Shown piece after piece: positions 2,413 to 43,736 of a DNA stretch of 64,000 bases. Made by a program: the position numbers and the translations under genes. Below the pieces are notes generated by a model. That model worked only from the letters and a program-made list of their open reading frames with translations, did not search any database and had not been told where the DNA came from. Origin of the DNA: Epithemia pelagica (taxonomy: Eukaryota; Protista; Bacillariophyta); contig OX337238.1 of NCBI GenBank assembly GCA_946965045.2, forward strand, positions 2,480,001-2,544,000, in the 5' to 3' direction. Each line of letters begins with the position of its first letter. The first letter of the stretch is position 1.

Positions 2413-2906
2413 TGCATATGCTGTTGACACGGTGATGGGGAGAAACTGTGTTCGAGCGGTACTACAGTACCAGCTATCATACAGCACGACCATGTTTTGG
2501 AACATTATATAGCATCATAAGACCCAAAGTGTCATTCTTAGAGATAGAGCATTTAACATAGTGTCCCTAGACCCAAAGAGTCATACCTAGAGATGGCACG
2601 AGTCTGACAAAAGAGGCCAGCGGGGTGTGGTGGCCGATAGAATTCTCGTGGTACGCGATTCGTCAACAATTCCAGCAAGAGCTGATTCTCTGGATCCATC
2701 AAGCCGTCATTATGGGGCATTCTTCCGCCCTCTTCCGGTCCTTGACCATTCACGCGAGCGATGCCCCGCAAAGGCGGTTGTACCACAAAATGATAAAGTT
2801 GTACTTGTTCGGGGAGACCAGCCCTGCACTTAATTCGAATAAGACGGCCACGGGTTACGGAGCCCCTCGCAGTGGTATTAATATCTAGACCATGCCAATT
2901 TGCGAG

Positions 2907-2982
2907 GATCGATGGAATTCCTTATCGTGTTGATTTTTTGGTTTGGCTGCACTTTTGATTGTTGAGAAATTGAATGTTCCTC
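2907..2982 (+). pseudogene. 3' fragment of a family C gene (hydrophobic MEFLIxLIFGL tail)
   Basis: Strong similarity to 18340-18415 and to the reverse complement of 50035-50112. Confidence 0.6.
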
Positions 2983-3012
2983 TTGACTGTTTTGATGGCA
3001 GAGTCGTAAATC

Positions 3013-3224
3013 TACTTTAATAGCTGAGGGTGGACGAGGAGGAGCTAGGGTGTGAGGAGTGGCTCAACTCCGAGAAGGGCAATAGCGACGAGGAGTGGAC
3101 TGCCCCTGTGAGATCCGCCTAAGCGGATCGAGGGGGCAGTCCACGACGAGAAGCTATTGCCCGACGAGGAGTTAAGCCACGAGGAGCGCCCTGCGACGAG
3201 GAGTCCCACGGGGCTATTAAAGTA
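3013..3224 (+). other. 212-nt rod-like fold-back element (structured RNA or MITE candidate)
   Basis: Terminal 12-bp IR TACTTTAATAGC/GCTATTAAAGTA, seven nested stems, a central GATCCGC-CTAA-GCGGATC hairpin, and symmetric GACGAGGA/GAGGA internal loops. Confidence 0.8.
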
Positions 3225-4658
3225 TGTTAGCTTCCTTTGTCACAAGGAGTCGTGCCAGCGCACGCTAGGTAATTTTCAGTCTTCCTAAGTGATCGGCTCT
3301 CTCCTTCGATACTTTGAAGTCGAGAGCCAAATTATTATTATACAATTAGGCTGGCCCAACTTTTGATAGGGCACCAGGTAATCTTTAATTGTTTGTAAAT
3401 AGCCATGTCACTTAAGTGATCACATCCGATTACATCGGATGAATAATAACGGTTAATGCTTAAGTAACATTTGTCTTACATTTATGGAAGGCCAATCAAA
3501 CTCCGAGGCGTGCCTCGTTTGTAAATAAGACAACAGAATACTTACGAGTAGAGTCAATGAATGTCCCCCATTACCCCCACGCCTCTTCTCTCCTTTCCCG
3601 TTCCCGACCCGACCCGACCACGACCACTGAATAAACGACACAAACACAACAACAATGGGAAAGCTGACCAAGGTGAGTCCTCCTTCTCCGGGAGGATGGA
3701 GGATGTATCCATAATCCATCCACCAACAAAAGCTCTACCAACTCCCAACTCACAATGATGGTGGATTGTTGCGAATTGCGAACCTCTGTCCATTGTCCAT
3801 TCCTGGCCGTCTTTTGGTTCGTTTTTCGTTTCGGTGTTTGGGTGGTGCTACTTTTTGTTTCTTTTCCCGGGCTATTTTGCATGATTACACTAGAATAAAA
3901 AATCTACGTACAGTAATTTTAGGGGCTTAGGTAGTGTGAGTGTGGGGAGTGACTTACTCCTCAGTGAGTCCTCAGTGAGTGGGGAAGGGTAGGACGACGA
4001 GTGGTAAAGGTAGCCAAGTACGTTCTACAGAGGACCAAATTCTTGTAATAGTGGCCAGTTCTTTGACACACTCTCCCGCGAATGTTGTTGTGATTCATCC
4101 GATTCACTCATTGGATTGGGAAAACTGAGAGGGTCATCAAAAACTGCATGGAAGTAGGATATGATTTGAGCTTGCTGTCGTCATTTTTGTGGATTTCTTC
4201 TATTCTTGAGTTGGAACAGAACGGTTGTTCGATTCCACAAACACTCTGCATGATATAGGAAACGCTAGAGGTATAAGTTGTCCCTTTTGGTTCCTCCGGA
4301 AGTAGAGCCAATCTTTTTTCTTCTCATGGTTGGAACAACAAATAAACGTAAGGACGTGACACTACAAACGGCTGCAAGTCCACAAACGCTATGTCTTTGG
4401 AGGATTCCTTGCGTTCCGTCTCGGGTCGACTGTATACCTTCCAATCAAACAGAGGTAGTTGGGCGCTTGCTGTTCCGTCTCTGGTCCACGGTATGCCACT
4501 GTACCTCCCCATTCCAAAGATGGGGCGCTTGTTGTTCCGTCCACATGATTCACAGTTATTATCCAAGCAACCCCATAGGAACACAAACGAAAATGAATGC
4601 AGGAAGGATCGTCGTTGCCGATCCAACCACTCGTACAGAAATGGTAGAGAACCGCACG

Positions 4659-4925
4659 TCACCCAGAAAAGAGGCACTCTAGTATAGTGTGTTTGGCATG
4701 TTTGTTGTTTCGATTCCAGTCCAACCATTCTCCCACACACATAGAAGGCACTACTCTACCATTCTTGTAGGTGCAAGTGCTCCAATTCCACCGAGAGCTC
4801 GTGTACGGTGAAGTAGAGGTGGCTGTTGGACCACCACCGTCATCATGATGGTCGTCGTCCAGCATGGGACGGATGGTAAGGTTTGTACCTTGGTGATGGT
4901 GACGGGATGTTTTCATGTCCTCGTC
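4659..4925 (-). pseudogene. 3' part of an unknown ORF interrupted by copia element 1; the 5' part starts at 12330
   Basis: Removing the element and one CGTC copy restores KGQELALEIAFGRVFTLKDSDEPHVDDDEDMKTSRHHHQG, homologous to KGQELAALELAFQRVVTLKDPDEPHDDRNESRHHQG in ORF 48512-49249. Confidence 0.7.
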
Positions 4926-5165
4926 TGAATAAATAATCACGGGCGCCCCCTTTGTAACCTACAAAAGGCCTCGCCATGCCTCGCTACGCACCGCCTGGCA
5001 TCGCCCGGCCCCTAGTTATGTGTTCGCTAGTGGGTACCGTGGTCGCTATTTGGCCCCTACGTGAGCGATTTGCCCCCAAAGGGCACCCCTAGTTTAGTCA
5101 TCATAATTTCTGATAGTTTGATTGTTGCAAGCCGTATATTGCGTCTAGCCGTCAGTTTTTATTCA
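4926..5165 (+). repeat. 5' LTR of copia element 1
   Basis: Direct repeat of 12090-12329 (239/240 identical), with an 8-bp terminal inverted repeat. Confidence 0.97.
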
Positions 5166-5660
5166 GTTTATCAGACCCAAGTCTGTTGTTTCCCCACTGT
5201 TCGCCGGACGGCAAGCGCCTGATCAACGCTCGGGAGTTGTTCGCGCTAAGCGGCTTCGTCACTCGCTCGCTTGCGTCATCTCTGTGACTCGTTTCTGTCA
5301 CTGTGGGACCCACTCGCTAATTTGTGACTTGCGACTGCACAACGTACCGTGCACGTGCTCGTACACGTGGACTGTCCATCCACGCGCCCCGTACGACTCA
5401 ATTATATAAGCCTGCTGGCTTTTGACACGTGCCTGCTTGCTCGCGGAATCGCCGGTTCGCCGACTCGCGGATTCGCCGATCGCTAGCTCGCTCGCTCGCG
5501 GAATCGCCGGACGACTACTCGCCGATTCACTCGCAGATCGTTGGCTCACAGAAATTCGCTCCTCTCATCACAATTGCAAATTTCTGCACAAGAACAAGCC
5601 TTCCCTTGCCATCCGTTTGACCTTCTACTACCCTCCTACCCTTCATCCGACCCTTGAACC

Positions 5661-7731
5661 ATGGCCGCAAATGCCTTCCGTACTGCACTGGGCCGCTGTG
5701 GCTACGACAATGCTACCGTTGGGTACCTAACGCAACAGGGCTTCACGACAACGGATCAGTTCCTGGAGTTTCCTATCAACGAAGTAAAGCCCATGCTGAA
5801 GACACTAGCCAAGAACCTACCTTGTCACCCTACCCTACCAATTCAACCTCAAGTTCCTTGGCTTCCGAATGTGGTTGGAATACCATTCTGTCCGTGGTCA
5901 GGACCTTGATGCTGGTGCTTATACTGGTGACGTAATCACCAAGTGGATGAGACGCGTAATGGAACTCGCGAATGCCACCACCACTGATGGTCAGGATGAC
6001 CCAGTACCACCCAAAAGGCTAACGAACCTTGCCGATTGGGAACGTCACGACGGAATGTGGCGCACGTACTTGGGTCAGCACCGTAATCCGACAACGGGAG
6101 TGCCGCTCACCTACGTATTGCGTGAGGAGTCCGACGTACCGGACGACGCACTAACCGCCGATTACGACTGCATTGACGACGACCTAGTCGCGACCACTCG
6201 TCATGAGGGGGACCAGTACAAAGCCGACCGACGCAGAGTGTATGAGCTGTACTACCCTCTTATTTACGATGGTCCGGCATGGACGTTTGCTAAAACGCAT
6301 GCAAAATCAAAGGACGGCCGCGAGGCCTACCTAACCGTCAAGCGGCAAGCCACTGGACAGGCCGCGAGCATTCTGCGCAAGAAACAAGCTTATGCGCAAA
6401 TCGCAAATGCTAAGTTTACAGGAAGAGGGAAGTACCGCTTCCATGACTACATTCACCGTCACCAACACGCGCACAACACCCTGGAAGAGCTTGGCGAAAC
6501 GGTCGGGGAAACGAAAAAAGTGACCGATTTCATGAATGGGATCACCGATCCGACGCTCGTCCAAGCAAAGACCGTCGTCAACGGTGACCAGGAGAAGTTG
6601 GAGAACTTCGAAGCGTGCCAGCAATACTTCTTGACTGTGCACAGTGCCGCCAAAACCGAAACGCAGGACGACTCTCGCAAGATCGCCGCTGCTAGTACCA
6701 CCCCAAGCAAAGGAAAGGGCAAAGGGCGCAATCAGAAAAAGAGCAAGAAAAAGAAGGACCGCGTTCATGCTGGTCACTACGATGCCGACGAATGGGCAGA
6801 CCTGACGGAGGACGAACGCAAACAAGTCCAGGCTCTTCGCAAAGAGCGCAAAGAAAAGCGGAAGCTTGGATCCGTCACCACAGACGACTCTTCCAACGCA
6901 TCGTCGAAGAGGTCGAAAACGTCGCATGGGAGTACTGCTGAGGACGCAATCTCAGTAGACATTGATGACGACGCTAAGCCTGAGGCTAAGACCAACGTAT
7001 CGGTCATTATGGAAGTAGACGAGAACTTGCTTGACTCCTCTGTTGACAACGTACCGTCGCCAGACAAGCACTCTAAGTTCCGCACTTCCGCCCCACCTGC
7101 AGAATCATCCGAAGATGATTCGCAGCCGACAAAGTCCTCAGCTGGCAACAGCTTTGGACGTTTCGCGCATAAGGCTAAAGCACAACCGAACGAACCCGGA
7201 TCTGCGTCCGTCAAATCCGTACGTACTCGCCCCATGGGGGAATACGAGACCTATCCACCGATGTGGCAATGGGAAGAGGACGGACGTCCCGATATGAGTC
7301 ATATGACCATCCCGCCAGTCCCGGAACACGGCGACATCTTTGTGAAGCTGCCGCTACCGGTCAAAGGCAAGTATGCTGAAGGGCCTCGCAACGTCCGCTC
7401 ACTTACCAAGCATGACCAAAGTATGCTGAAAGGAAGCTTCTGCGAAGAGATCGACACTATTGTACACAATAGTCCAATTTGGTCTTGGCGCTGGTCTAAA
7501 ATGTCAGGCTATGAACGAGAAGAGCGCCAAATGTACCATGTGTGCAAACGCTTAGCCGAGCACACGGAAGTGTTCGACGAAGCTTTGAAATACACTATGC
7601 TTGCCAATGGACAATTGGCTGCCGCAGAGCGAAGGCGTAATGTATGCGGTCGTTATTCCGCCGATCTTGAATTTGATGTCCGTGACCCCAATGTCTCTGA
7701 CAAGTCTGCCGACAAGTCTAATTCCTCCTGA
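5661..7731 (+). CDS. gag: Gag of element 1, with a frameshift near 5810-5825 and a long C-terminal extension
   Basis: MAANAFRTALGRCG... (5661) continues in another frame as VTLPYQFNLKFLGFRMWLEY...; CoDi-like PLTYVLR, KKVTDFMNGI and GHYDADEW motifs. Confidence 0.85.
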
Positions 7732-7737
7732 TGGAGT

Positions 7738-10700
7738 GTGCCCTGTGTATCCGCTGCCGAAGCAGTAAAAATTGATAAAACGAATCTTATTGTTCAATCG
7801 AATGCACACGTAGGCACCCATTATAGTTACTCTAAACGTTTCGCACATCGTCTATGTGCTATGAACACCGACGAATATGGTGTTGAGACCGTTGAGCTCA
7901 CCTGTGAGTTGGACTCACATGCGGACACCTGTGCCGTGGGAAGAGACTTCGTAATGCTCTCCGAAGCCCACCGCTATATCAGTGTGCATCCGTTCGCGGA
8001 GGAATATAACCCGCTGACCAATGTCCCTATTGCGACTGTTGCTACTGTCTGGACTGACAGCGAAAACCAGTCTTACTTGCTTGTTATCCACCAAGCATTG
8101 TTTTTAGGGGACCGTATGGGCAGTTCGTTACTCTGTCCGAACCAGATGCGTGCCCATGGCATCGTTGTCAACGACGTACCTAAACAGTTTGACCCGCACA
8201 GCACGCATAGTATCCACGTACCGGATGCCGATCTCACTATCCCGCTCACCATGGCTGGTGTGATAAGTGGTTTCGCCACTCGCAAACCCACTTCTGACGA
8301 GCTGGAACACTTGCCACAAGTTGTGCTAACTGCCGATAGCCCATGGCAACCTCGTTCTACCGCCTTTGCGGACGCGGAGGAGAAACTGGGTGTAGCTGCC
8401 GCTACTGTCGTTCGCAATGGCGATCCGAATTCGATTGCCGCATCCTCCATTCCACGACTCATCAAAGCAGTGCGAACGTACCAGCATGCTTTTGCCAATC
8501 CATCACCCGATCTGGACGCCGACGCACAAGGCGACGACCTATACGAACGCTTGATAGCGACGGTCACTGTCCATCCAGAGAAGGAGGAGCCTGATGTAGT
8601 CCCGGAGGACAAACGTGAACGTCGGCTGTACATGATCAAGACTGCTAACGAGTCTTCCCCAGCCGATCCTGCTGGAAAGGGAGTGCTTGACGCAGCCGTA
8701 CTGTCACAACGTTGGGGCATTGGTTTACCCAAAGCGAAGAATACGCTTAAAGTGACGACGCAGGCTGGAGTACGAAACGTATTAATCCCATCTGAGCGTA
8801 AGGTCCGTAAGAAGGCACCGTGGCTCAAATTCCCCAATGTGAAAGGCCGTTGGTTCTCGGACGAGATGTTTGCCAAGGAAGTTTCACTGAACGGGGACAC
8901 GGGCGCCTCGATCTTTACAGACGGCAAAGGATTCGACCACGTTTATCCCTGGAAGTCGAAAAAGCAACATCCTGAAGGATTGATGTCTTTGATTCACAAT
9001 GTAGGGATTCCCCAAACAATGGTATCTGATGGTGCCCGAGAATTGTTCCTAGGGAAGTCCCGTGAAATATGCAACGAGTACCGCATAAAGATGGAGAAAA
9101 CGGTTCCTTATAGTCCATGGCAGAACGCCGCCGAAGCGAGCATTCGTGAACTAAAAAAGGGAGTTGTCAAGATTATGAGGACAACCGGCGCACCACGACG
9201 TTTATGGAGCTATGCTCTTAAATGGTGCTCACACGTACGGCAACTCACGGCATCCGATATCCCTGAATTAGATGGACGTACACCGTTCGAGCATGTAATT
9301 GGCTCAACGCCAGACATCTCTCCATTAGCCATGTTCCAATTCTATCAGCCGGTGTATTATCGCATGCCCATGGCACAGTTTCCCTTCGAAAAAAGACTGA
9401 TAGGCCGATGGTTGGGTTTAGCCGATGATTGCACCGATGATATGGCCTATGAAATCCTAACGCAAGAGGGCAATCATGTCACACGAAAAGATGTGTGGGC
9501 CATTCCGGAAGACGACCTGAAGAATCCGACGATTCATCAGCAGTTGTTGGACTATGATGTCGCTATTCAAACGCAAATGAAAGAGCCGCCATCTGATGGC
9601 ACAACTGGGAGCGATCCACCCCCAGACCTCTTTGACGAAGGTGAACTTCTAGAGCCCTTGTTCCCAGAGGCTGAAGCCCTGGAATCCGACGCGTACACGC
9701 CGGAGGAACTAGACGAATATCTCACCGCTGAAGTCATGCTGCCGCGAGGAGGTGAAAGCGCTCGAGCGAAAATCATTGGACGCACGAAAGATGCTCATGA
9801 GCGACCTATTGGTGAGCGCGACGCCAACCCAATCCTTGATACCCGGTACTACGATGTACAGTTTCCGGATGGATCGGTCGAGTCGTATGCAACCAATATG
9901 ATCGCAGAGAATCTGTATTCGCAAGTTGACCCGGAGGGTAATGCGTTCAACACATTGAAAGCCATTGTGGGGCACCGTAGTGATGAGACCGCAGTTAAGC
10001 GAACAGACGCATCGTTCCTTGACGGCACATCACACCACACAACGAAAGGCTGGGAATTGCAATGTGAACTGTCCGATCAATCGACTGTTTGGCTGCCGCT
10101 CAAAGACGTCAAGAATGGAAATATGATTGAAGCCGCCGAATACGCAGTATCCACTGGCATCGCAAAAGAGCCTGCTTTCGCATGGTGGGTCCCACGTGCA
10201 CTTCGCAAACGAGACCGCATTATCAAAAAGGTTAAGTCACGTTATTGGAAGCGAACGCACAAGTATGGCATTGAGTTGCCCCACTCTGTGGAAGAAGCCC
10301 TGGCGATTGACCGTCGAACGGGGACTGACTTCTGGCGTAAGGCTATTGAGAAAGAAATGAAGAACGTTGGCATTGCTTTCGAATTTCCAGCTGATGGCGA
10401 AGTGCCTTCTGGATACAAGCATATTCCCTGTCATATGGTTTTTGACATCAAATCAGACCTGCGACGAAAAGCACGGTTAGTGGCCGGAGGCCACAAAACT
10501 GATCCACCCAAAGAATCGACCTATTCTAGTGTGGTATCACGCGATAGCGTACGCATTGCTTTTACTATCGCTGCACTAAATGGTCTTGATGTTCTCGTCG
10601 GGGACGTGCAAAACGCATATCTCAACGCACCGACTAAAGAGAAGACCTATACCACCGCGGGACTCGAATTTGGACCAGATAAGGTTGGACAACCTGCACT

Positions 10701-11967
10701 GATAGTGCGCGCATTATATGGTCTCAAAAGTTCTGCTGCAAGGTGGCGTGATCACATCGCCGCAACGCTCCGCGATATGGGATTTAAGATGTGTCAAGCT
10801 GATCCGGATGTATGGCTTCGAGCGAACACTCGACCATCTGATGGGTTCCAGTATTACGAGTATGTTTTGGTCTATATTGATGATCTGTTGATCGTTAGTC
10901 ATGATCCCAAAACCGTGATGCAGGACCTGCAGAGGCGCTATACGATCAAGCCCGACAGTATCAAACCACCAGACGAATACTTGGGATCCAAAATACGGCG
11001 TTATACCATACCCGACACGCAAGATCCGTCGAACCGTGATCGTTGGGCCATGTCCGCTGACAAGTATTGTAAGCGTGCTCTTGCCGAAGTCGAAACCGAA
11101 CTGGAGAAATCCGGAGAAAAGCTGAAGTCCAAAGTGACGACGCCGATCGCCGATGGATATCGCCCGGAATTGGATGCGACTCCTGAACTTGACGCAAGAC
11201 GTGCGAACTATTACCAAGGACTGATTGGAATTCTCCGTTGGATTGTTGAACTCGGTCGTATCGACATTACAACCGCAGTCTCCCATATGTCCCGTTTTAT
11301 GGCGAATCCACGAGAAGGACATCTCGAGCAAACGTTACACATCTTCGCGTATCTGAAGAAATACGATAAATCCTCCATTGTGTTCGATGACACAACCCCT
11401 GACTTCGACGAGTCACGTTTTACCCGACCGGATTGGTCTGAGTATTATCCTGATGCTGCCGAGCCAATTCCGCCAAACGCACCAGCACCGCGTGGAAACG
11501 CTGTCACCACGACTTGCTTTGTCGATGCTGATCATGCTGGATGTCGTGTCACACGGCGCTCTCAAACAGGAGTCCTACTGTTCTTGCAACGAGCACCGAT
11601 CATGTGGTATTCAAAACGACAAAACACTGTTGAGACGTCTACATTTGGCAGTGAGTTCGTGGCGATGAAGACTGCCATTGAAATGATTGAAGCATTCCGT
11701 TATAAGTTGCGAATGATGGGTATCCCGTTGGATGGAGAGACGAATGTGTTTTGCGACAATGAATCTGTGTTTAAAAACTCGACGCAGCCGGAATCAGTCC
11801 TAAAGAAGAAGCACAACGCAATTGCTTATCATCGGACTCGTGAAGCGCAAGCCGCTGGACTTGTGCGCATTGCATGGGAAGAAGGTGAAACGAATCTTGC
11901 CGATATCCTAACCAAACTGCTACCCGGACCTCGATTGCGATTCCTGGCCCAACGTATCATGTGGTAG
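7738..11967 (+). CDS. pol: Pol polyprotein of element 1 (PR-IN-RT-RNase H), intact, 1409 aa
   Basis: ELDSHADT protease, SDGARE/WQNAAEASIRE integrase, KARLVAGGH/YIDD RT, VDADHAG/SEFVA/CDNES/LADILTK RNase H. Confidence 0.97.
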   Translation: MPCVSAAEAVKIDKTNLIVQSNAHVGTHYSYSKRFAHRLCAMNTDEYGVETVELTCELDSHADTCAVGRDFVMLSEAHRYISVHPFAEEYNPLTNVPIATVATVWTDSENQSYLLVIHQALFLGDRMGSSLLCPNQMRAHGIVVNDVPKQFDPHSTHSIHVPDADLTIPLTMAGVISGFATRKPTSDELEHLPQVVLTADSPWQPRSTAFADAEEKLGVAAATVVRNGDPNSIAASSIPRLIKAVRTYQHAFANPSPDLDADAQGDDLYERLIATVTVHPEKEEPDVVPEDKRERRLYMIKTANESSPADPAGKGVLDAAVLSQRWGIGLPKAKNTLKVTTQAGVRNVLIPSERKVRKKAPWLKFPNVKGRWFSDEMFAKEVSLNGDTGASIFTDGKGFDHVYPWKSKKQHPEGLMSLIHNVGIPQTMVSDGARELFLGKSREICNEYRIKMEKTVPYSPWQNAAEASIRELKKGVVKIMRTTGAPRRLWSYALKWCSHVRQLTASDIPELDGRTPFEHVIGSTPDISPLAMFQFYQPVYYRMPMAQFPFEKRLIGRWLGLADDCTDDMAYEILTQEGNHVTRKDVWAIPEDDLKNPTIHQQLLDYDVAIQTQMKEPPSDGTTGSDPPPDLFDEGELLEPLFPEAEALESDAYTPEELDEYLTAEVMLPRGGESARAKIIGRTKDAHERPIGERDANPILDTRYYDVQFPDGSVESYATNMIAENLYSQVDPEGNAFNTLKAIVGHRSDETAVKRTDASFLDGTSHHTTKGWELQCELSDQSTVWLPLKDVKNGNMIEAAEYAVSTGIAKEPAFAWWVPRALRKRDRIIKKVKSRYWKRTHKYGIELPHSVEEALAIDRRTGTDFWRKAIEKEMKNVGIAFEFPADGEVPSGYKHIPCHMVFDIKSDLRRKARLVAGGHKTDPPKESTYSSVVSRDSVRIAFTIAALNGLDVLVGDVQNAYLNAPTKEKTYTTAGLEFGPDKVGQPALIVRALYGLKSSAARWRDHIAATLRDMGFKMCQADPDVWLRANTRPSDGFQYYEYVLVYIDDLLIVSHDPKTVMQDLQRRYTIKPDSIKPPDEYLGSKIRRYTIPDTQDPSNRDRWAMSADKYCKRALAEVETELEKSGEKLKSKVTTPIADGYRPELDATPELDARRANYYQGLIGILRWIVELGRIDITTAVSHMSRFMANPREGHLEQTLHIFAYLKKYDKSSIVFDDTTPDFDESRFTRPDWSEYYPDAAEPIPPNAPAPRGNAVTTTCFVDADHAGCRVTRRSQTGVLLFLQRAPIMWYSKRQNTVETSTFGSEFVAMKTAIEMIEAFRYKLRMMGIPLDGETNVFCDNESVFKNSTQPESVLKKKHNAIAYHRTREAQAAGLVRIAWEEGETNLADILTKLLPGPRLRFLAQRIMW

Positions 11968-12089
11968 CACCCCTTTTAGATCCAAAATGGGATCGCCCCC
12001 TTTTGAAGAATAGTCCGACGTACTGGACCGGCCTCTGCTGACATGACGAACTAAACGAAGTTGCCCACCCCGATTTTGTTCGCGGGGAC

Positions 12090-12329
12090 TGAATAAATAA
12101 TCACGGGCGCCCCCTTTGTAACCTACAAAAGGCCTCGCCATGCCTCGCTACGCACCGCCTGGCATCGCCCGGCCCCTAGTTATGTGTTCGCTAGTGGGTA
12201 CCGTGGTCGCTATTTGGCCCCTACGTGAGCGATTTGCCCCCAAAGGGCACCCCTAGTTTAGTCATCATAATTTCTGATAGTTTGATTGTTGCAAGCCGTA
12301 TATTGCGTCTGGCCGTCAGTTTTTATTCA
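12090..12329 (+). repeat. 3' LTR of copia element 1
   Basis: Direct repeat of 4926-5165. Confidence 0.97.
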
Positions 12330-13380: not shown

Positions 13381-13564
13381 TTGTCGTCGTTGAGGTCGCT
13401 GATTTATTCCATGCTAATGATGGTGGTGGTTCCATCAGTTACCATCTCATATCTCATGATATCATATTATAATACTCCATAGGAGATCTCGGTAATAGGA
13501 AGGAGGAAGGTATATTATGGGGTACAATATTGTATACTCGTATTGAAAATATATTGAAGGCGAA

Positions 13565-13614
13565 TTCTCGAGAATCGCGCGGGCATCTCCTACCATCACG
13601 CAAGACTCGCCACT
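13565..13614. promoter_or_regulatory. Conserved ~50-bp motif TTCTCGAGAATCGCGCGGGCATCTCCTACSATCACGCAAGACTCGCCACT, candidate bidirectional promoter
   Basis: Also at 1167-1205 (partial), 26641-26690, revcomp 39817-39866 and revcomp 47525-47574. Usually lies upstream of a family A gene and, except at 1167, is divergent from a short Kelch gene. Confidence 0.5.
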
Positions 13615-13630
13615 TTTAAGGGCTGGGTCA

Positions 13631-16462: not shown

Positions 16463-17597
16463 ATGAAGAAGACACTGCATCAGCAAGCACAGCAATCCGG
16501 AGTTTGCTTTGTGGACAGTAACGATCCGCATTGGAATACCAATGACTGGCCTCCCCTTTTGGGTGGATGGCGTGGGCACCATGCATCGGTTGTGCTCGAC
16601 CATCCCAAACATGATGACAGGGCACAGACGGTTTGTTGTTTTGGGAGGAGACAAACAAGGACAAGGCTTGACCAACTCAGTTCTGCTGATGAATTTGGCA
16701 GAAGAAAATAAGCATTGGCGGGAAGGACCGCCGTTGAACAGCAACCGCGCCAGTCATGCTTCGGTGGTTTGTAATGGTGGAGTTTATGTGATTGGAGGAT
16801 TCGATGGTTCATACTTAAATAGTATTGAACGTATCGATGTTGAAACTTTGTCTTCAGGGTCATTGACAAGCGCTACCAGTAACCAATGGACAACCTTGAC
16901 TTGTCGAATGTCTACGAGAAGATCTGGATGTTCTGCTGTTACCGTCTACAATCGTTATATTGTCGTGGTTGGTGGATTCAACGGAAACTATACGTCGTCG
17001 GCTGAGATAATTGATTCAGCTGTGCCAAGCAACCACGCTGTTTTTGCTGGGCCATCCATGACAGTTCCTCGGTCTAGTTGTGCGAGTGCTTTCATTGGTC
17101 ATCGCATCTTTGTTGCTGGAGGCTACAAAGGGAAAATTGGATCTCTCCAATCAGTGGAGTACTTGGAGATTCATGATCCTTCAGGCAATGAGACAATGAC
17201 CACAACAAGTGCAGTTTTTCCATCCTCATGCCGTTGGACACGTCATGACAAGCTTGAGCTTTCCATGTCACGCTGTTATCGTGCAGTTGTATCTGTTGGA
17301 CTATGTCTGATTGTTGCGCGAGGTTCCTTTGCCGCGGACACTGTTAATGTGTTGGATACTCGACGAAACACTTCGTGGACCTTTCCCCAATTATCAGGGC
17401 CGCGTTATCTATCCAGTGCTGTGGTTCACTCGAGGGGAATTGCTGTGATTAGTGGAGATGACAATGCTTCCTGTGCGACACTTTCTTTGGTTGACAAGAA
17501 TACGTGGTGTTTTCGTCGACTCATTGAGCAGGTGCCGAGTACAATCTTTGGATCAAGTACAGGATCACCGGGATATGCTCTGGTCTGGCAAAACTGA
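16463..17597 (+). pseudogene. Kelch-repeat beta-propeller gene with a 1-nt frameshift near 16630
   Basis: MKKTLHQQAQQSG...WPPLLGGWRGHHASVV shifts into the VVLGG... frame; repeated GG-Y/F..W..R Kelch blades; paralogous to 60378-61409. Confidence 0.85.
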
Positions 17598-17749: not shown

Positions 17750-18420
17750 CAAACGAATGGGTGATTCGGTGCTCCACCAAATTGTAGACTATGGTGATGT
17801 GGACCATATTATTTGCTCGGTAGTGGGTAGAAGCGGCAATGAAATGTTTGCAGATTGCCTGCCAAGATGGACCAATCAGTAAGTTGTGGTCAGCAAGAAA
17901 AAGCTAAACCATTGCGATCAGAGAACGGATCACGATGACTATGGTAGACGCTTATTGGTGACCATTTTGGGTCCCTTGGCGAACACCGTACATCAGTGGG
18001 TGCGAGATGGAGAAAAAGACGCAGTTGCAGCCTCGACTTTTTTGGCGTTGAATGTCACGGCTAAATTGGCGCAAGCTTCGGAGCCTGATGTCTCACCAGA
18101 GGCCTTTAGTATGGTTGATTGTCCATCCCACTTGGGTTCATTGCATGGGTCGTCGTTGGGATTGCGTGCGATAAACAGAATGCAGAAGCGCATCAAGGCA
18201 TTTGAGGACTCTGTCGCATCTTTGGCAACAGATTTGAAAAAGGAGAGCTCGACCATAGCTTGCTTGTTGGAGGAGCTGGAGAAGGCGCGACTGTCCAAAG
18301 CATCCATGATGCAGAAAGTCAAGACGGAACAGTGGAAGGTGGATTCCTGATGCTGTTGAGTTTTGGTTTGGCTGCACTTTTGATTGTTGAAAAGTTGTTT
18401 GTTCCGCAATCTTGATCCTG
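17750..18420 (+). pseudogene. Family C gene (GDSVLHQIVDYGD...VTILGPLANTV...coiled coil), disrupted
   Basis: Paralogous to 44880-45560, 50031-50798 and 58570-59397. Confidence 0.7.
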
Positions 18421-19064
18421 TACGATCAACCGTTGCGACAGCAAAGTTGCCAAGTACGTTGTAAAGAGGACAAAATTATTGTAGTAGTGACCAGTTGTTT
18501 GACACGCTCTCCCATGGGCTCGTTTCAACGGTTGTTGTGATTCATCTGATATCCGATTCACTCATTGGAAAGCCAAACCTTAAAGGGGTCATGAGAACCG
18601 TCATGTGCTTGTCGTCCTGTATGTGGTGGTGGTGACGGGATTCGTTCGTGTCGTCGTTGTATTCGTGACGGAACACCGCGAAATTGCGTTTTGCGTTCTG
18701 GGTCGAGAATTGGATGGCAAATGGCAAACCAAAATCCCAAATCATCCAACCCACCTTGATGTGGAACCAAACTGCTAAGCTAGCTAGAATAAGATAATAG
18801 AAACTATCAAGATTACGATTGAGTGTGATCCATGTTCATTGATTTAGGGCAATGTTATTCTTTATCTACGTAGCTAATTGCTAATTGTGATCGGTGTGCA
18901 TCCTCAATCCTCAGCCCTTCGTGTGCTATGCACTGCTATGTGACACAACAAACCAATGCACTGATAGAATGAAAAAATGAGATGGAGACAAACGACACCC
19001 ACACAACATACAATAGGATTAGCTACGATGAAGCTAGCCAAATAATGAGGATAAGCTGAAAACT

Positions 19065-19340
19065 CAAAACGGCAGATTGGAGCTAAACGGCAGATCGGAG
19101 CTAAACGGCAGATCGGAGCTAAACGGAAGAAAGGCGCTAAACGGAAGAAAGGCGCTAAACGGAAGGAGCTACGAGAAAACACGTAGGATTTTGTACTAGG
19201 AGGCGTTAAACGGCAGAAAGGCGCTAAACGGCAGAAAGGCGCTAAACGGCAGATCGGAGCTAAACGGCAGATCGGAGCTAAACGGCAGATCGGAGCTAAT
19301 CGGCAGATCAGAGCTAATCGGCAGATCAGAGCTAAACGGT
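19065..19340. repeat. 18-bp minisatellite AAACGGCAGATCGGAGCT, ~14 units in two blocks
   Basis: 5 full + 1 partial units, a ~37-bp spacer, then 7 full + 1 partial units; variants with AAAGGCGCT. Confidence 0.95.
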
Positions 19341-20087
19341 AGAGCACGTAGTAAGTAGGACTGATCCATGACCATTTAATATCCCGGTTTGAATTTTTAG
19401 CTTGAGCCTTCTTAGCAATGATTCTGTCTTCTTTATGTGCTGATCCCCGAGTCGCTCACACCAACTCTATGTCTTGGGTCTTGGACAAATTTTTAAACTC
19501 TGTAGCTACTAGTTCTGCGACTCAATCTTATTCGGTTGCTAATGAATGTTCTATTTGTCTATTTGGATGCTAATTGATTGTATCTATAGAGGTCAACAGT
19601 TTAAGCTGCAGTTCTACCTGTTACGAGCCACTGCTACGAGTGTCATCTTGTCTCGACGTTGCGGACCATCAGGCGCAAAAGGCAATTTCGCGATGTTCCG
19701 ACACGTTGAAAGGCAATTTGCACAGAGTGTTCATCCTTCTATTTTTGTATAGAGAGCATATGGGAAGGAACATGTTGAAAGTTCCCCGTTGCCGCCCGGT
19801 GCATTCGGAACCTGGGGGGGAAACTCCACGTGCGTATGGACACACGTCACCATACGACACTTCCCAACTGACGCCCCTACTGCGTCAGCACATACACACC
19901 CATAGCGTAACATGACCATACTCTTATAACTTACTTACTCAATCCCCTTTTACGAAACTAGTTGGCCCTTTTAATTGGCAGTGACCACGGTTAAAACAAC
20001 ACGCTTCCTCTGCGCGATAACTGTGACCTTTCATAAGAAAAACTCACCGATTTGTGCCGTGAACTACTTTCAGGAGAGCAAGAGATC

Positions 20088-26432: not shown

Positions 26433-26944
26433 TTACCATCTCATGATATCTTTTATACTCCTTACTTAGGATCTCGTGTGACGAGATCCTTTTTCAATTG
26501 AAGAGAGGTGACCGGTGACCGATGACCGATGACCGATGACCGATGACCGATCTCTCTCTACTCGTACTCGTACGTCGTAGGCAGGTATATTATGGGTTAT
26601 GGGGCATATTGAAATTATATTGAAGGTACCTTGTTCTCTATTCTCGAGAATCGCGCGGGCATCTCCTACCATCACGCAAGACTCGCCACTCTTAATCCTT
26701 CACACCCCATCTTTTGCATCCCATATAGAATACGAATGGCAACATACCTAGGTAGTCTTATCGTGATCCATTATCCATTACGGCATTCGACGTCAATGGA
26801 GATTTCGTGTGAGCACACGAATTGCTTGGTTGCGATTGTGATTGATCGTCATGGTACCGTTAATCCTGTTTCATCCCTCATCCCAGTAGCAAAGCATTCA
26901 TTCGATAGCGCAAGCGCCAGCGCGAGGAAAAAACACCCTGTATC

Positions 26945-28021
26945 ATGAGCGCGGTGAATGAAACGCCCACCGTTGCGGATGATGGCCTTTCGGTAGGTTC
27001 CTCCTCATCAGCAAGTCTTCCACCGAACACGTCTTGCTCCCGCTGGTATCTCTTTCGCGGATAGTCCTCCTACCGAAAACGACGAGCATTCCTCTGGTCG
27101 ACGCATTCCCTTGCCGGTGGAAATCGTCATGAAGAAATCAGGTCAGTACTTTCATCGTTGTCAGTGTTTCACTGACAAACTCACGTCCAGTGCATGTGAG
27201 TTGAGTCTCACCAAAGATCGAATCAATCGTCATGGCATTTTTGCAGGCGCTGATTCCCATGAAATAGCCTCGTTAAGACAGGCGTTGAAAGCCATGGAAG
27301 AAGAAAATGATGACTGGAAGCACAAGTTCGAGTCGATGCGAGAACAATTCCGCGCAGATCCGCCATCTCCTTTGCTTTTTGTGCTTTTAGAGTGGCGGAT
27401 CTGAACGCACAAAAAGCAAAGGAGGTGGCGGATCTGAACGCACAAAAAGCATAGGAGGTGGCGGATCTGTACGCACAAAAAGCAAAGGAGGTGGCCGATA
27501 AACAAGAGGAGGTGGCGGTTCTACAAAAGCAAAAAGCATTGGCGGAGGCGGGTCTAAAAGCACAATTGGACGTAGGCCGAGAGAGAGAGTGCATCATGAC
27601 TGCCCTGCGCTGCTGCAAAATTCCACAAGCACTGGAAAACAAACTCGTAAAGTTCAACATAAACGATGGTTCGTCGTCCGCCGCCAGTGCGAGTCTCGTT
27701 TCAGTTGAATCCGATGAAGCAGCACAAGAGACATGGAACCAAATTTACTCGCAGACGCAAACGTTGCTAACGGAATCTACGTCGACAACACCCCTCGAAG
27801 TCAACGAGATCGTCAAGTCGTTCGGACTGCTCACAAAGTTTGCTCGCATCTCATTGCAGTTCTGGCACTTGAACGACCAGTCGTCTTGTTCTGTTCAAAA
27901 GACACACAACAGTGTAAAGCTTAACTCACGACGTAAAAGCTCGAGTAGTGGTGGAAGTGACTCATCAGGAAATTCTGCGACAGTTCAGATTATGGGAACC
28001 TCATCAAGTCACAAAGGGTAG
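26945..28021 (+). pseudogene. Family A coiled-coil gene copy 2 (frameshifted, micro-inversion, internal TAG)
   Basis: Same exon 1 and intron as 1454-2412 but with a short frameshifting deletion, an inverted repeat unit and a stop at 27452-27454. Confidence 0.75.
27392..27500 (+). repeat. 33-bp tandem repeat encoding 11-residue (EVADLNAQKAK) coiled-coil units
   Basis: Units start at 27392, 27425, 27458 and 27491; one inverted unit at ~27354-27390. Confidence 0.9.
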
Positions 28022-38770: not shown

Positions 38771-40408
38771 GACGCCCGGTCGAGGGCGAGTGTCGGAACA
38801 AACATCTGTCCGACAGAAAAACATCTGTCTCATAAATTCTCACATACAAAATCGACCTCAGCACTCACCATCACCTTCTAGACCTAATCGTAATATCATA
38901 ACTTTCAAACACTACCAAAACGTATCTCTACTTCCACCACTATTAGGACCAACCATGAACCTTCCAAACGAAAGACCCGACAATGACCAACCCCAAGCGG
39001 TTACGGCCATTAACATCACTCCTGACTCCCTCGAAGCGAGCGCCTCTTTAAACACCAACACAATGACATGATGTCCGCTCTCTTTTTTGCTTCTTGTCGT
39101 TCAGATTCCAATTGTGCTTCAAGATGCGCAACCTCCCTTGCTTTTTCGAGGATTTGTTTATCCATGGACTCGAACTTGCGCTTCCAATAATCCTTTTGTC
39201 TTTCCATGGCTTTCAGCGCTTGTTCCAACGAGGCTATCCGCTTGAAATCAGCGCCTGCAACATGCCATTACGATTGATTCGATCTTTGGTGAGACTCGAC
39301 TCACATGCACGCAAAGGACGTTGGGAATTTGTCAGTGAAACACGGACAAGAATAAAAGCACTAACCTGCGTTGTCCATAATGATTTCCACTGGCAACGGA
39401 ATGCGTCGACCCGAGGAATGCTCGTCGTTTTCGGTAGGAGGATTATCCACGATGAGGGATACCAGCGGAAGCAAAATCTGTTCGGTGGAGGCCGAGTGAA
39501 GACTTGCTAATGAGGAGGAACCTACCGAGAGGCCATCATCCAAAACGGTGGGCGTTTCATTCAACGCGTTCATGATACAGGGTGTTTCCTCGCGCTGGCG
39601 CTGGCGCTATCGAATGAATGCTTTGCTACTGGGATGAGGGATGAAACAGGAACCAGGATTAACGGTACCATGACGATCAATCACAATCGCAACCAAGCAA
39701 TTCGTGTGCTCACACGAAATCTCCATTGGCGTCGAATCCCGTAATACATCACGATAAGACTATGTTGCCTTTCGCTATCCATATGGGATGCAACAGATGG
39801 GGTGTGAGGGATTGAAAGTGGCGAGTCTTGCGTGATCGTAGGAGATGCCCGCGCGATTCTCGAGAATATGGTACCTTCAATATAATTTCAATATACCCCA
39901 TATCCCATAATATACCTTCCTACTCCTACTCCTACTACCTCTACTCTCTAGCTACCGTAGATTGCGCTAGTAGTTAAGCCTCACCGGAAGATAAGCCTCA
40001 GTGGGTAAAGCTTTTGAGTTGCGGCTTGTACAATGGGGACATATCATATATCAATCTTAACTCTTTTGGGACGGCAAATTTTTTACTCCGGTCATTGACC
40101 ATTTGGTTAAAATTTTTACTTAACAAAATCACCGATCACTTATAGGATTCTCCACGTAAGCGATGACTCCCAACTCGTGATTCAAAAACCATTGACCATA
40201 AGGACAATTCCGAAAATCGAGACTTTGTCGTTAATGTAACTCAACAACCAAACCATTTGGTCATTACTCCTTCATACATACTCTTCCATTTGTTACAAGC
40301 TTTCAGTAGCCGGTCCAAATGCCGAATTCCGACCGGTAGTTCTTGCGTACGAGCAGTTTTGGGAGTACCCTCATTTTTGTTGCACCTCCTTCGTCTACGA
40401 CCTTCACC

Positions 40409-42925
40409 ATGGCAGATCGGTCAACCCAAGACACCGACAAGCCTCCTTCGGCTGCGAGGGAACTTGACTTTAGACAGCCTGACTCTGATGATGACGAAGA
40501 TAACGAAGAAACCTCTGTCCCTTTGATTTCTGCTCATACTCCCACAGAAGAACAAATTAGTGTTTGGAGATCGGAAAACAAGTACATTGATGAACAGATG
40601 GCTGCGTTGGACCTGGTTCTATTCAACCCGGTGGCTTGTGCTCAGGCTTACAAAGACGACGGCCCACTTGGACTATTCTTCCAGTTCATCCCGCGAGGAT
40701 TCATTGATCGCTTCATGCTCAAGGCCACACAAGAAGAATTGGCCTCCAAGGATGGCAACTCTGGCAAGAAGATCGTCCTTACACCCAAGCTTTTTCGGTG
40801 TGTCATTGGATTAGATATCGCATTATCTCTTTGCAACAGTACCTCCATCAAGGAACTGTGGAGCTCTAAAATGTTTCTCGGCTCTCTGTCATTCTCCAAT
40901 TCTATGGCCAGAGACACCTTCACTACCGTCCGTGGTTCGTTGAAGGTGTATTCGACCTCGACATGTCGCAACATGGAAGACCCGCTGTGGCAAGTCCGAC
41001 CGCTTCTTGGACACGTTCTCCGAAATTTCGCTTCTGTTGGGTACGTTGTTGGGCCCGTTGCGCTTGACGAGGCGAGTTGTCCGACCAAAGCAAGGACCAA
41101 AGCGTCGTCCTACCTTCCGTCTAAACCGAATAAATTTGCCATCCGTTTTTACGCTCTTGTTGGTTGGAAGAGCGTTTATACGTTCGCCTTGTGGGATAAT
41201 GGCACCGGTAATGCACTCAACCAAACGCCTGCCGAACGCTTTATGAAGGTATTCGGTGAACTTTGGTCGTCCTTCAATCAGTTTTCACAAGCGTGCAAAA
41301 GTCGGATGCGCAACGCTTGTCCAGTAGCATTTGACAGCGCATCAATGCTCTGGGTGCTAATGATTGGATTGCTATACAGGTCGATAGCAGGAGCTGCTTC
41401 TCATCGCCGCAGCAACGATTCCCAAGTCCATACTGTCGTGTATATGGACAATTACTATACACGACACGCATTGGCCCGGGCTTGTTCGGATTTCACAGAC
41501 AATTCCATGAAAGTGACCGGTACCGTCAAGATGAACCTTGTTGACAAGGTGAACAAACCATCTGTGATCCAGGCAACGAAAGATTTAGAAAAACTTCCTC
41601 GTGGTTCTTGGATTTTGGTCCAGGTCTACACGGCCGTGATTCATCCGGACAGTAAAATACAAAAAGAGAAAGAAAAAAAGGACGGTTATTCTAAGTCGTT
41701 ACCAAGAGCGAAAGTCGGCTTCAACGAGTCCGATGTACTCGAAGTTGCCAATGAATACTGTATTGTTGCGAAACGATGCGGTTTCATTGTCTTTCATGAT
41801 AAAAAGCCCGTCGTTTTCTATACGAATGATCTGGCGGATACTCCCCAAACTTTGTTCGGTGACAAGAGTGACGAGCATGCCGTAAGATGCGTACATGGTC
41901 TTGCCACGTTGTTTCGGTGGACGGGGGATTCGTATCACGCCAAGCAATCATTCAAGGTCCCAGCCCCTGTGGTGGCATACAATTTGTTCATGAACGGGGT
42001 TGATCGGGCGGACCAGATGCGATCGACGAATGCTTGTCGACGCAAGGAGAAACATCTCCATATGACGATCTGGCATTTTGTCGTGGATCTCTGTATTCTG
42101 AATGCGTTCCAAGTGTACCTGAAACTTCGGAATTCACAATTGATCGACACATACTACGCTAAAAAGCAAGGCACAGAAGAAGAAGAAATTCGAATGACCA
42201 AAGAGATGCCTTTGAGGGAGTTCAAGAGGAAGGTCTGTGTGGCATTGTGCATGCCGTATGCAGAAACTTACAATGCCACGAAGAAAACAAATAGCAAAGC
42301 CGGTCCACAGGTTGCGTCGGCTGAGAACATTCAAGTCAAGTTGCCACCTCGTCCCCCAGCACGATACAAGACACCGCCGGTCCGAGCAAGAAAACTAAGA
42401 CGTTGTACGTCTTCGACAAGGAAGAGTGCCCGTTTTGAAGTTGACCTGGAAGCGGATACTCCTGGTGGTGCAAGCGAGGTAACCAAAGCCTCCGAAGCTT
42501 CAACGGAAACAGAAAAGACTGTCCATCCACTCCGTTTTGAGACCAATTTGTCTCATCACATTCTTCAACCCAACCCAGTTAATCATGGACGCCGACACAG
42601 AAGCACATGCTACTTGTGTAGTATCATTGGCACTGGCGGCACACATCCAGTCACGAGCTATGGATGTGTGCAATGTCAACGGTGCTTCCATCCCGAGTGT
42701 TTTTCACTCTATCACAACAGTTGGAAGGTGGCCTTTTGCAACGATCGTTGTAAAGAGATTCGCGATCTGTTAGAGGGTTTCTGGACTGCGAATCCCCATG
42801 TCCTCGAATACAACATGGAAGGCGAAGATACACCAACAAAGGAAGATGTGGAAGAGTACGAGATTCAACAAGGCAAGAAGGGAATTTGTGCTAAAGAAGA
42901 AGACATTCGAAAATTTGGAGAATAA
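40409..42925 (+). CDS. piggyBac transposase (DDE_Tnp_1_7) with a C-terminal Cys-rich domain
   Basis: ALDE, MDNYYT and GVDRADQ catalytic DDD; SKPNKFAIRFY; YNLFMNGVD; CYLC...CVQC..CFHPECF..YH. Confidence 0.95.
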   Translation: MADRSTQDTDKPPSAARELDFRQPDSDDDEDNEETSVPLISAHTPTEEQISVWRSENKYIDEQMAALDLVLFNPVACAQAYKDDGPLGLFFQFIPRGFIDRFMLKATQEELASKDGNSGKKIVLTPKLFRCVIGLDIALSLCNSTSIKELWSSKMFLGSLSFSNSMARDTFTTVRGSLKVYSTSTCRNMEDPLWQVRPLLGHVLRNFASVGYVVGPVALDEASCPTKARTKASSYLPSKPNKFAIRFYALVGWKSVYTFALWDNGTGNALNQTPAERFMKVFGELWSSFNQFSQACKSRMRNACPVAFDSASMLWVLMIGLLYRSIAGAASHRRSNDSQVHTVVYMDNYYTRHALARACSDFTDNSMKVTGTVKMNLVDKVNKPSVIQATKDLEKLPRGSWILVQVYTAVIHPDSKIQKEKEKKDGYSKSLPRAKVGFNESDVLEVANEYCIVAKRCGFIVFHDKKPVVFYTNDLADTPQTLFGDKSDEHAVRCVHGLATLFRWTGDSYHAKQSFKVPAPVVAYNLFMNGVDRADQMRSTNACRRKEKHLHMTIWHFVVDLCILNAFQVYLKLRNSQLIDTYYAKKQGTEEEEIRMTKEMPLREFKRKVCVALCMPYAETYNATKKTNSKAGPQVASAENIQVKLPPRPPARYKTPPVRARKLRRCTSSTRKSARFEVDLEADTPGGASEVTKASEASTETEKTVHPLRFETNLSHHILQPNPVNHGRRHRSTCYLCSIIGTGGTHPVTSYGCVQCQRCFHPECFSLYHNSWKVAFCNDRCKEIRDLLEGFWTANPHVLEYNMEGEDTPTKEDVEEYEIQQGKKGICAKEEDIRKFGE

Positions 42926-42992
42926 GAGTGAGAGATTTGATTCATTGAAAACTAGGTACACGATAAGATATTCAATAATTTAGTAATGAGGT

Positions 42993-43736
42993 TTATTCTA
43001 CACTGTCATCTGTAGAGGAGGCCGAATTGTCATCACTATCTTCGTGGTTGGTAGCCCCTTCTTTGAGGGATGAATCGGCGTCGAATGGAGCTCCGGAATT
43101 ACGGAATCCAACGTAGTCGCCATTTGGATCGGGGTACATTTTGTGAATGATTAGCTCAATACACTGTGGAATCCGGACTCGGTTCCAACGACCCAATGAT
43201 CCATACTTGGACGCGATATAGAACTTGTAGAGGTGATGGCGTGTGGCGCGATTGTGTCCGTTGTTTCGTTTATGGGCTTCAAGACCTGCGGTTTGAAGGG
43301 CAATTTCATAAGTCACGCCATCACAGGGGGAAAGTCCACATTGGTCGCAAAGAAGGTCGTTGTTGTTTTGTATAAAAGAAGAGACAACTGCTGCTGGTTT
43401 GGAGTCTTCGGCTTTGTCCTCCTTGTCTTGTTTGTCTCCTTCAGTTTCGGTGTTAACTCCTTTGGTCCGTTCCTTGTCTTCATCTTTCTTGATCATTGCC
43501 TTCACGTCGGAATCAATGATCTGCTGGTTGATTGCTTGAAGATCGATTTTCTTGTTCTCTTGTTGTGCTTGTTGTAACAATTCACCACCCAACGGACTTA
43601 GGAAGAGAGGGGACGACGATGCTTTGCAAACATGCTTGTAGGTAGCGGGATCCTCTTCGTCTATGTAAATCGTCTGTGATTCAGATGTTGGAGTACTTGG
43701 CTTGTACCATTTCGAGTGTTTGGAAGGAGAGTCCAT
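42993..43736 (-). CDS. Second, convergent ORF inside the piggyBac (247 aa, Cys/His motif)
   Basis: Intact ORF between the transposase stop and the right TIR: CDQCGLSPC...NRATRHHLYKFY...GSLGRWNRVRIPQCIELIIHKMYPDPNGDYVGF. Confidence 0.75.
   Translation of the reverse strand: MDSPSKHSKWYKPSTPTSESQTIYIDEEDPATYKHVCKASSSPLFLSPLGGELLQQAQQENKKIDLQAINQQIIDSDVKAMIKKDEDKERTKGVNTETEGDKQDKEDKAEDSKPAAVVSSFIQNNNDLLCDQCGLSPCDGVTYEIALQTAGLEAHKRNNGHNRATRHHLYKFYIASKYGSLGRWNRVRIPQCIELIIHKMYPDPNGDYVGFRNSGAPFDADSSLKEGATNHEDSDDNSASSTDDSVE

Follow-up and report, generated by a model that had tools for sequence, protein, structure and literature searches.

In bacteria, the IS91/ISCR elements (one-ended rolling circle) and the IS200/IS605 elements, whose hairpins are subterminal, carry imperfect hairpins that are meaningful on one strand only, and they have no inverted termini. 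The terminal hairpins of linear single-stranded DNA viruses contain purine-rich mismatched 'bubbles' that are kept as strand-specific signals. At the level of base pairing, CGAG opposite CGAG (pyrimidine-GA-purine) is a classic stable context for tandem sheared G.A pairs and is known as a local motif. Helitron-like elements have one terminus that is more conserved, and some Helentron-type families have a 5' stem-loop (PMC11417382). The canonical Helitron (HLE1) has a 5' TC and a 3' CTRR terminus (PMC11417382, PMC4067079). A further study describes the Helitron 3' hairpin as a terminator that can be bypassed, with flanking DNA then being transduced (PMC4778049).

We identified a 212-nt rod-like hairpin in a 64,000-nt stretch of the genome of the diatom Epithemia pelagica (the window, meaning the whole stretch analyzed). 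In this genome it forms the conserved end of mobile insertions that make up a small family, of which two copies were found in the sample described below. We tentatively favor, at somewhat less than an even chance, a reading in which this hairpin serves as the only conserved end signal of an element that is non-autonomous and handled as a single strand in a rolling-circle manner. The sample consists of the window, which lies on contig ctg1337l of assembly ERZ21939226, and ten loci around paralogous retrotransposon proteins, approximately 300 kb altogether. A different contig of this assembly encodes a ribosomal protein uL15/L27a with 96% identity to an Epithemia clementina protein, and its next best matches come from further diatoms.

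Structure of the hairpin

The hairpin and the insertion that carries it consist of the following parts, in window coordinates.

2899–3006: host repeat, left flank; homologous to 18343–18405 (plus strand) and to 50121–50041 and 44990–44900 (reverse)
3007–4012, plus strand: hairpin-bearing insertion of ~1006 bp, missing from three paralogous repeat copies in the window; the bounds carry a 1-nt ambiguity (G at 3006 or at 4013)
3007–3012, plus strand: 6-nt tail from the host junction to the first paired base
3013–3224, plus strand: rod-like hairpin, 212 nt; the plus strand is the purine-loop strand
3033–3040, plus strand: loop GACGAGGA, left arm, opposite 3195–3202
3044–3194, plus strand: core common to L018 18281–18432 (minus strand), from blastn, the pair alignment and the covariance model
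3054–3058, plus strand: loop GAGGA, left arm, opposite 3181–3185 (GAGGA)
3071–3076, plus strand: loop CGAGAA, left arm, opposite 3163–3168 (GACGAG); identical in L018
3087–3094, plus strand: loop GACGAGGA, left arm, opposite 3145–3152 (GACGAGAA)
3119–3122, plus strand: apical tetraloop CTAA, closed by a 7-bp stem (3112–3118/3123–3129)
3145–3152, plus strand: loop GACGAGAA, right arm
3163–3170, plus strand: motif GACGAGGA, right arm; its final two bases are paired in the next stem
3181–3185, plus strand: loop GAGGA, right arm
3195–3202, plus strand: loop GACGAGGA, right arm, in the same strand orientation
3225–3991, plus strand: insertion interior, with short ORFs only and no family match
3992–4012, plus strand: far end of the insertion, with the loop-like motif GACGACGAG; the final bases are TA
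4013–4924: host repeat, right flank; 72% identical to 49977–49089 and also matching 18443–18605 and 44842–44732

Both strands were folded, a check proposed in a preliminary description of this DNA. As RNA, the plus strand of 3013–3224 forms a single rod of -129.2 kcal/mol, compared with -68.8 +/- 4.1 kcal/mol for shuffled sequences (z -14.8; 0 of 200 as good), and the minus strand reaches -107.7 kcal/mol (z -10.9). With DNA parameters the plus strand has an energy of -58.4 kcal/mol (z -8.9), and the advantage of the purine strand is 4.7 kcal/mol versus 21.5 kcal/mol with RNA parameters. The nested stems and the four symmetric internal loops lie where the preliminary description placed them, but the outermost region (3025–3032/3203–3212) is less regular than it stated. 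Its observation that the loops read the same on both arms is correct for their strand orientation, but the 6x6 loop has CGAGAA on one arm and GACGAG on the other.

When the two arms are aligned, they form 71 Watson-Crick pairs and 4 G.U pairs, with 4 gaps and a longest unbroken Watson-Crick run of 12 bp. Nearly all of the other oppositions on the plus strand are purine-purine (26 of 27, comprising 21 G.A or A.G, 3 G.G and 2 A.A); there is a single C.A and no pyrimidine-pyrimidine opposition, and the ratio of G.U to A.C on the purine strand is 4:1. Within the hairpin the plus strand contains four occurrences of the motif GACGAGGA, against just two in the remaining 63.8 kb of the window. Similarly, CGAG is found eight times and CTCG not once in the hairpin, whereas the whole window contains 255 and 249, respectively. 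The asymmetry is genuine and, as the preliminary description had argued, differs from that of an inverted duplication. Along the hairpin the purine motif is spaced by approximately 18 nt.

Another palindrome of this genome, 223 nt long (L012 23303–23525), was scored in the same way as a control. It has 6 G.U, 7 A.C, 5 purine-purine and 2 pyrimidine-pyrimidine oppositions, so that purine-purine oppositions make up 5 of 14, compared with 26 of 27 in the window hairpin and 11 of 13 in the second copy described below. The control shows the mixed spectrum of a decaying inverted repeat, and the observation made for the hairpin thus stands, far beyond chance. The arms of the control palindrome are 109 nt long and 79% complementary, and its GGGTCG/CGACCC motifs are in the ordinary inverted orientation.

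When GACGAGGA is placed antiparallel to itself, the successive oppositions are G.A, A.G, C-G, G.A, A.G, G-C, G.A and A.G. Because the 8-mer faces itself with G.A/A.G and C-G/G-C pairs, the 'loops' are probably a stacked non-canonical helix and not open loops, as far as can be judged from sequence. The tandem sheared G.A pairs suggested earlier are a reasonable reading of CGAG facing CGAG. The k-turn-like sites suggested alongside them are not, as all of the loops are symmetric (8x8, 5x5, 6x6 and 8x8) and none has a 3-nt bulge.

The stems are five differing sequences, each complementary solely to its partner on the opposite arm. Adjacent stems on one arm are non-complementary with the exception of one 7-mer in the second copy, and an origin from tandem stem-loop units was rejected for this lack of complementarity. 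PARCEL coding repeats were also rejected, since the ORFs crossing the hairpin do not exceed 54 aa and Pfam gave no match at E up to 10.

The hairpin lies at one edge of an insertion

The hairpin is not free-standing; it begins 6 nt inside the left edge of the segment 3007–4012. The equivalents of 2899–3006 and of 4013 onward directly adjoin in all three other copies of the host repeat in the window, and since the flanks are contiguous in these paralogous copies, the ~1006 bp of 3007–4012 are unique to this copy. On the evidence of the window locus alone, the 1-kb difference could be an insertion here or a deletion in the other three copies. The junction falls between G/C bases, with at most one duplicated base. 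The segments 3232–3243 and 4001–4012 form a possible inverted match that is not significant (9 of 12, P 0.06).

The interior (3225–3991) has no other copy in the ~300 kb sampled and is not common to the insertion at the second locus. Exact and word look-ups with the interior and adjoining short ORFs matched this contig only. A gene fragment within the 1-kb interior was considered and dropped, as there is no family match and there are no relatives. At 3655–3680, 3' of a CT-rich tract, an ATG is followed six codons on by GTGAGT. This segment resembles the first exon of a gene, ending in a splice donor, and may represent part of a gene that was carried along; no relative of any kind was found. 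Neither the window insertion nor the second one has a poly(A) or other retroposition mark at its far end.

The surrounding region is transposon-rich, with Copia-type elements, a piggyBac-like ORF and repeated blocks with Kelch genes. A multi-kb block, present in direct and inverted copies (1146–1806, 13555–13616, 26631–27354, 39122–39868 and 46841–47575), surrounds the Kelch-repeat genes at 16509–17597, 51559–52764 and 60258–61409, and the hairpin-bearing insertion lies in one copy of the block. The right-flank repeat is interrupted at 4925 by a Copia-type LTR retrotransposon (4925–12329) with 241-nt LTRs that are 100% identical and ORFs for a 620-aa gag-like protein and a 1409-aa RVT_2 pol. 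This Copia-type family looks recently active, given 90%-identity protein clusters of 69 and 91 members that all come from this assembly.

A piggyBac-like element at 39935–44073 has a DDE_Tnp_1_7 ORF (40343–42925) enclosed by approximately 200 bp of nested inverted repeats, and TTAA beside both ends. The ends of this element are unrelated to the hairpin; the 9-mer AGTTAAGCC at its left end also occurs in the hairpin (3170–3178), probably by chance. The segments 19031–19378 and 27355–27565 hold an 18-nt minisatellite of at least 12 units and, separately, a 33-nt repeat block, which pairs with an upstream inverted copy to form alternative 37-bp hairpins.

A second copy of the hairpin

One further copy was identified in the ~300 kb, on the minus strand of locus L018 (18266–18437), with 78% identity to the window hairpin over 142 nt (blastn, E 1e-23). 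It is a 172-nt rod with energies of -119.9 kcal/mol for the purine strand and -112.6 kcal/mol for the other strand. In both copies the purine strand is the better fold under RNA and DNA parameters. The two natural copies were used to build a profile (hmmbuild) and a covariance model (R1), and the latter scores them at 168.8 and 180.2 bits. Neither nhmmer nor the two-copy covariance model found a third copy in the ~300 kb.

For the core (3044–3194, alignment A6), 50 pairs are predicted. Between the two sequences, 7 of these show compensatory change and 2 a wobble-compatible one (G.U to G-C), and no pair is broken. When the partners are slid by 1–3 columns, zero compensatory pairs are left. One stem differs between the copies by 2 bp added on both arms. 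The copies are 22% apart with almost no stem mismatches, which indicates that the pairing was kept while the sequence changed. The search for copies and covariation that the preliminary description had called for thus gave one more copy in the ~300 kb, with pairing that is compensated and not broken.

The facing loops in the L018 copy have 11 purine-purine and 2 A.C oppositions and no pyrimidine-pyrimidine ones. The purine motifs are on the same strand, and CGAG and CTCG occur in a ratio of 5:0 (13:0 for both copies summed). The apical loop is TTAA and its closing pair has changed from G-C to A-T. The ratio of G.U to A.C is 1:2. This copy lacks the 12-bp termini and TA flanks seen in the window, and conservation is confined to the apex-proximal core.

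A structured RNA transcribed from the purine strand, whether a protein-binding or guide-type scaffold at the end of an element or a retroposed hairpin RNA, is compatible with several of these features. The covariation, although from two sequences, has the pattern expected when an RNA helix is conserved, the lower stem varies more than the conserved core, and the window copy has both the larger strand difference under RNA parameters and an excess of G.U over A.C on its purine strand. However, that excess is reversed in the L018 copy, there is no match to an Rfam family, the far ends have no poly(A) or retroposition mark, and both copies lie in degraded, transposon-rich DNA. We consider such an RNA unlikely. 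Compensatory change in a DNA palindrome can also come from arm-to-arm conversion, without a single-strand or RNA function. The proposal in the preliminary description, that selection acts on the fold of a plus-strand RNA or single-stranded DNA, is partly supported, insofar as the purine strand folds better and the motifs are kept on that strand in the second copy.

The fold and its motifs could instead be a neutral by-product without function, in which a palindrome grew from short tandem units and identical spacers came to face each other. The ~18-nt period of the motif is what such growth might leave, and one study reports that extended palindromes can form from tandem palindromic units (PMC2996958). 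A parallel is also provided by a coding tandem repeat on two IMG/VR contigs (L005 7135–7272 and L006 1739–1876), which consists of a self-complementary hexamer and GACGAGGA and gives a weak 21-bit match to the model; this viral repeat shows identical spacers facing each other in a fold without homology. A neutral origin is nevertheless decidedly improbable, as each of the five different stems is complementary only to its partner on the opposite arm, and the stems are still paired across 22% divergence.

The L018 hairpin lies within a ~0.36-kb insertion that splits a Copia-type RT reading frame, as seen when the gene pieces were compared separately with intact paralogues. This is a clear case of insertion. 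Another insertion, of ~1.4 kb, also breaks this RT gene. It has terminal inverted repeats of ~90 nt with 96.7% likeness and represents a distinct non-autonomous DNA transposon.

In these two independent insertions the hairpin is located 6–9 nt from the junction at one edge, which on the purine strand is the 5' end of the insertion in each case. The junction bases (3007–3012 and the first three hairpin bases) are identical at 8 of 9 positions. These bases and the hairpin core are all that the two insertions (~1006 bp and ~0.36 kb) have in common. Likeness between the far ends and between the regions beside the hairpin has P values of 0.76 and 0.52, and terminal inverted repeats are not significant in either insertion (P 0.06 for the window, 0.37 for L018). 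The target sites also differ, being repeated non-coding sequence in the window and the RT gene at L018. The L018 insertion is flanked by a 3–6-nt direct repeat, and its junction lies in a short trinucleotide repeat. As the window insertion has at most one duplicated base, no fixed target duplication is seen. A slight resemblance between the two loci in the host DNA immediately beyond the hairpin end (P 0.027) may reflect a preference for certain targets.

These comparisons also bear on whether the hairpin could be a foldback element or MITE moved by cut-and-paste, in which case the mobile unit would be the hairpin alone, with two long inverted arms, and the adjoining DNA would be unrelated. 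The window copy has perfect 12-bp termini that start with TA, and DNA transposons are abundant in the genome (the piggyBac-like ORF in the window and DDE_Tnp_4 ORFs in L013 and L014). The genome also contains other palindromes of ~135–225 nt, one of which (L013 14276–14410) has similar TA-led termini and a 10-mer in common with the hairpin. However, the L018 copy has neither conserved termini nor TA...TA flanks and keeps the apex core, the opposite of what is expected for an element driven by terminal inverted repeats. Additionally, the motifs are direct and not inverted on the two arms, and placement of the hairpin at the same edge and in the same orientation of a longer insertion at both loci would be an unlikely double coincidence. 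We regard a MITE of this kind as improbable. The more specific Tc1/mariner MITE of the preliminary description is not supported at L018, where the 12-bp termini and TA flanks are missing, and it is the core and not the ends that the copies have in common.

Two other MITE types were tried and rejected. For a piggyBac MITE with TTAA duplication, the ends of the piggyBac-like element in the window are unrelated and the palindrome extends past TTAA in two elements. For PIF/Harbinger, with its 3-bp duplication, the empty sites have no such triplet. The L013 palindrome is 135 nt long and TA-flanked, with GACGAGGAGG in its apical loop on the minus strand. It may belong to a related family, or it may hint that the outer stem of the window hairpin was acquired from such an element.

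Searches for relatives

Comparison of the whole window with Rfam 15 gave no match at the gathering score. At E up to 10, the region 2800–3450 gave only four chance-level matches, all with E above 3. The Infernal search of Rfam proposed in the preliminary description therefore places the hairpin in no family.

The preliminary description had also compared the rod to viroids. The rod shape and size are the features that would fit a DNA copy of a viroid-like or retrozyme circular RNA. Such an RNA should match a self-cleaving ribozyme, but neither a ribozyme nor any other Rfam family was matched at E up to 10. Moreover, the stem is perfect to its last base where another terminal loop would be expected, non-homologous DNA adjoins the hairpin within the insertions, and both copies are DNA insertions with recognizable host junctions. 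A viroid-like origin is thus extremely unlikely.

Searches of larger sequence collections did not reveal relatives. In IMG/VR, the motif-spacing pattern matched acidic coding repeats only, and the terminal 17-mer of the hairpin matched only an unrelated phage gene. Peptide-pattern scans of IMG/VR and JGI metagenomes returned nothing usable. Exact patterns, including blocks conserved in the two copies, gave chance matches to GC-rich bacterial genes in GTDB genomes, JGI metagenomes and IMG/VR. No relatives were found by blastn against plasmids and phages or by a protein word search with the frame open through the hairpin. Pfam analysis of the called genes in the sampled loci (~300 kb) identified no Rep/helicase or other transposase, whether beside either hairpin copy or elsewhere in the sample.

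Proposed mechanism and significance

Three properties of the two copies suggest that a single-stranded form is of importance: the mismatches are strictly strand-biased, the purine strand folds better, and pairing has been kept. The two insertions have only the hairpin-bearing end in common, in the same orientation, and differ in length and content, which fits an element with one essential end; this 'one conserved end' pattern comes from two copies in ~300 kb. Rolling-circle elements are the known elements that work in this way, and a non-autonomous element of that working type is for this reason the reading that we favor.

Such an element would be recognized as a single strand and would probably also be copied or moved in that form. 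With CGAG facing CGAG (C-G, G.A, A.G and G-C), the purine strand would make the rod an almost continuous helix, in which Watson-Crick segments of 10–14 bp would be linked by stacked G.A pairs. The complementary strand would have pyrimidine-pyrimidine mismatches instead. The hairpin would then be the sole end signal required by the machinery, for either the start or the stop. With a variable opposite end, varying stretches of neighboring DNA could be carried along, as happens in rolling-circle (HUH-type) elements such as Helitrons and IS91/ISCR. A protein that reads the hairpin might dock at the repeated purine sites.

A more novel possibility, to which we assign only a minor likelihood, is a so far undescribed diatom element that is handled as a single strand and carries a rod with sheared G.A docking sites spaced by ~18 nt, or an RNA scaffold (guide-like or packaging-like) at the end of an element. 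If this were true, the hairpin would be a terminal structure without counterpart among described eukaryotic transposons. 

If the favored reading holds, the part conserved in this eukaryotic mobile element is a strand-specific hairpin of 170–210 nt, made of short helices joined by stacked G.A pairs. An architecture of this kind points to an intermediate of single-stranded DNA or RNA and to a protein able to read non-canonical pairs. The element would then extend the range of rolling-circle-type terminal signals, add a transposon class to diatom genomes, and offer a naturally occurring model for long helices in which tandem G.A mismatches recur periodically. Even on a plain reading, the locus illustrates that what looks like a 'structured RNA' in raw DNA may turn out to be the terminal part of a transposon.

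Comparison with known systems

Helitron-like elements, as described in three studies (PMC11417382, PMC4067079, PMC4778049), resemble the hairpin insertions in having non-coding derivatives and a stem-loop a few bases from one terminus. Further likenesses are one better-conserved end, heterogeneous carried DNA, the lack of a regular target duplication, and a strand-specific hairpin read on single-stranded DNA. However, neither orientation of either insertion has the 5' TC or 3' CTRR of HLE1. HLE1 inserts between A and T, whereas the junctions here are G/C bases in the window and a trinucleotide repeat at L018. The HLE1 palindrome lies ~11 bp from the 3' end, which agrees with the hairpin's distance of 6–9 nt from one end, but it is 16–20 nt long, which does not agree with a hairpin of 172–212 nt. 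The stem-loop of HINEs is likewise short, at 5–10 bp compared with 172–212 nt.

Helentron/Helitron2 (HLE2) elements have subterminal inverted repeats of 12–16 nt with the stem-loop outside one of them. The best candidate repeat here is 9 of 12 (P 0.06), with P 0.37 at L018, and the T-T insertion site of these elements is not seen at either locus. Given the lack of TC/CTRR ends, A-T or T-T targets and significant subterminal repeats, a hairpin approximately ten times longer than described Helitron palindromes, and no Rep/helicase gene in the ~300 kb sampled, the element is not a member of the described Helitron-like families.

Foldback elements and MITEs are similar in being short, non-coding, palindromic dispersed repeats with internally repetitive arms. 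However, their arm motifs are inverted and their termini conserved, while here the motifs are direct and the termini vary. PARCEL/DUF285 repeats are dyad-symmetric and present in diatoms, and their palindromic parts encode similar peptides on both strands; the hairpin differs in having no ORF running through it, no 25-residue repeat and no Pfam match. A rod punctuated by tandem G.A pairs every ~18 nt in a mobile element was not found described in the literature.

The terminal hairpins of linear single-stranded DNA viruses offer an analogy, in that an imperfect palindrome could keep its mismatches as each strand refolds on itself. In contrast to those viruses, there are no viral genes here and both copies have chromosomal host junctions. 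The IS91/ISCR and IS200/IS605 elements differ in being bacterial and in having much shorter hairpins. By analogy, however, they may have the same working logic as the insertions described here, with one conserved end, variable co-mobilized DNA and hairpins that are meaningful on one strand only.
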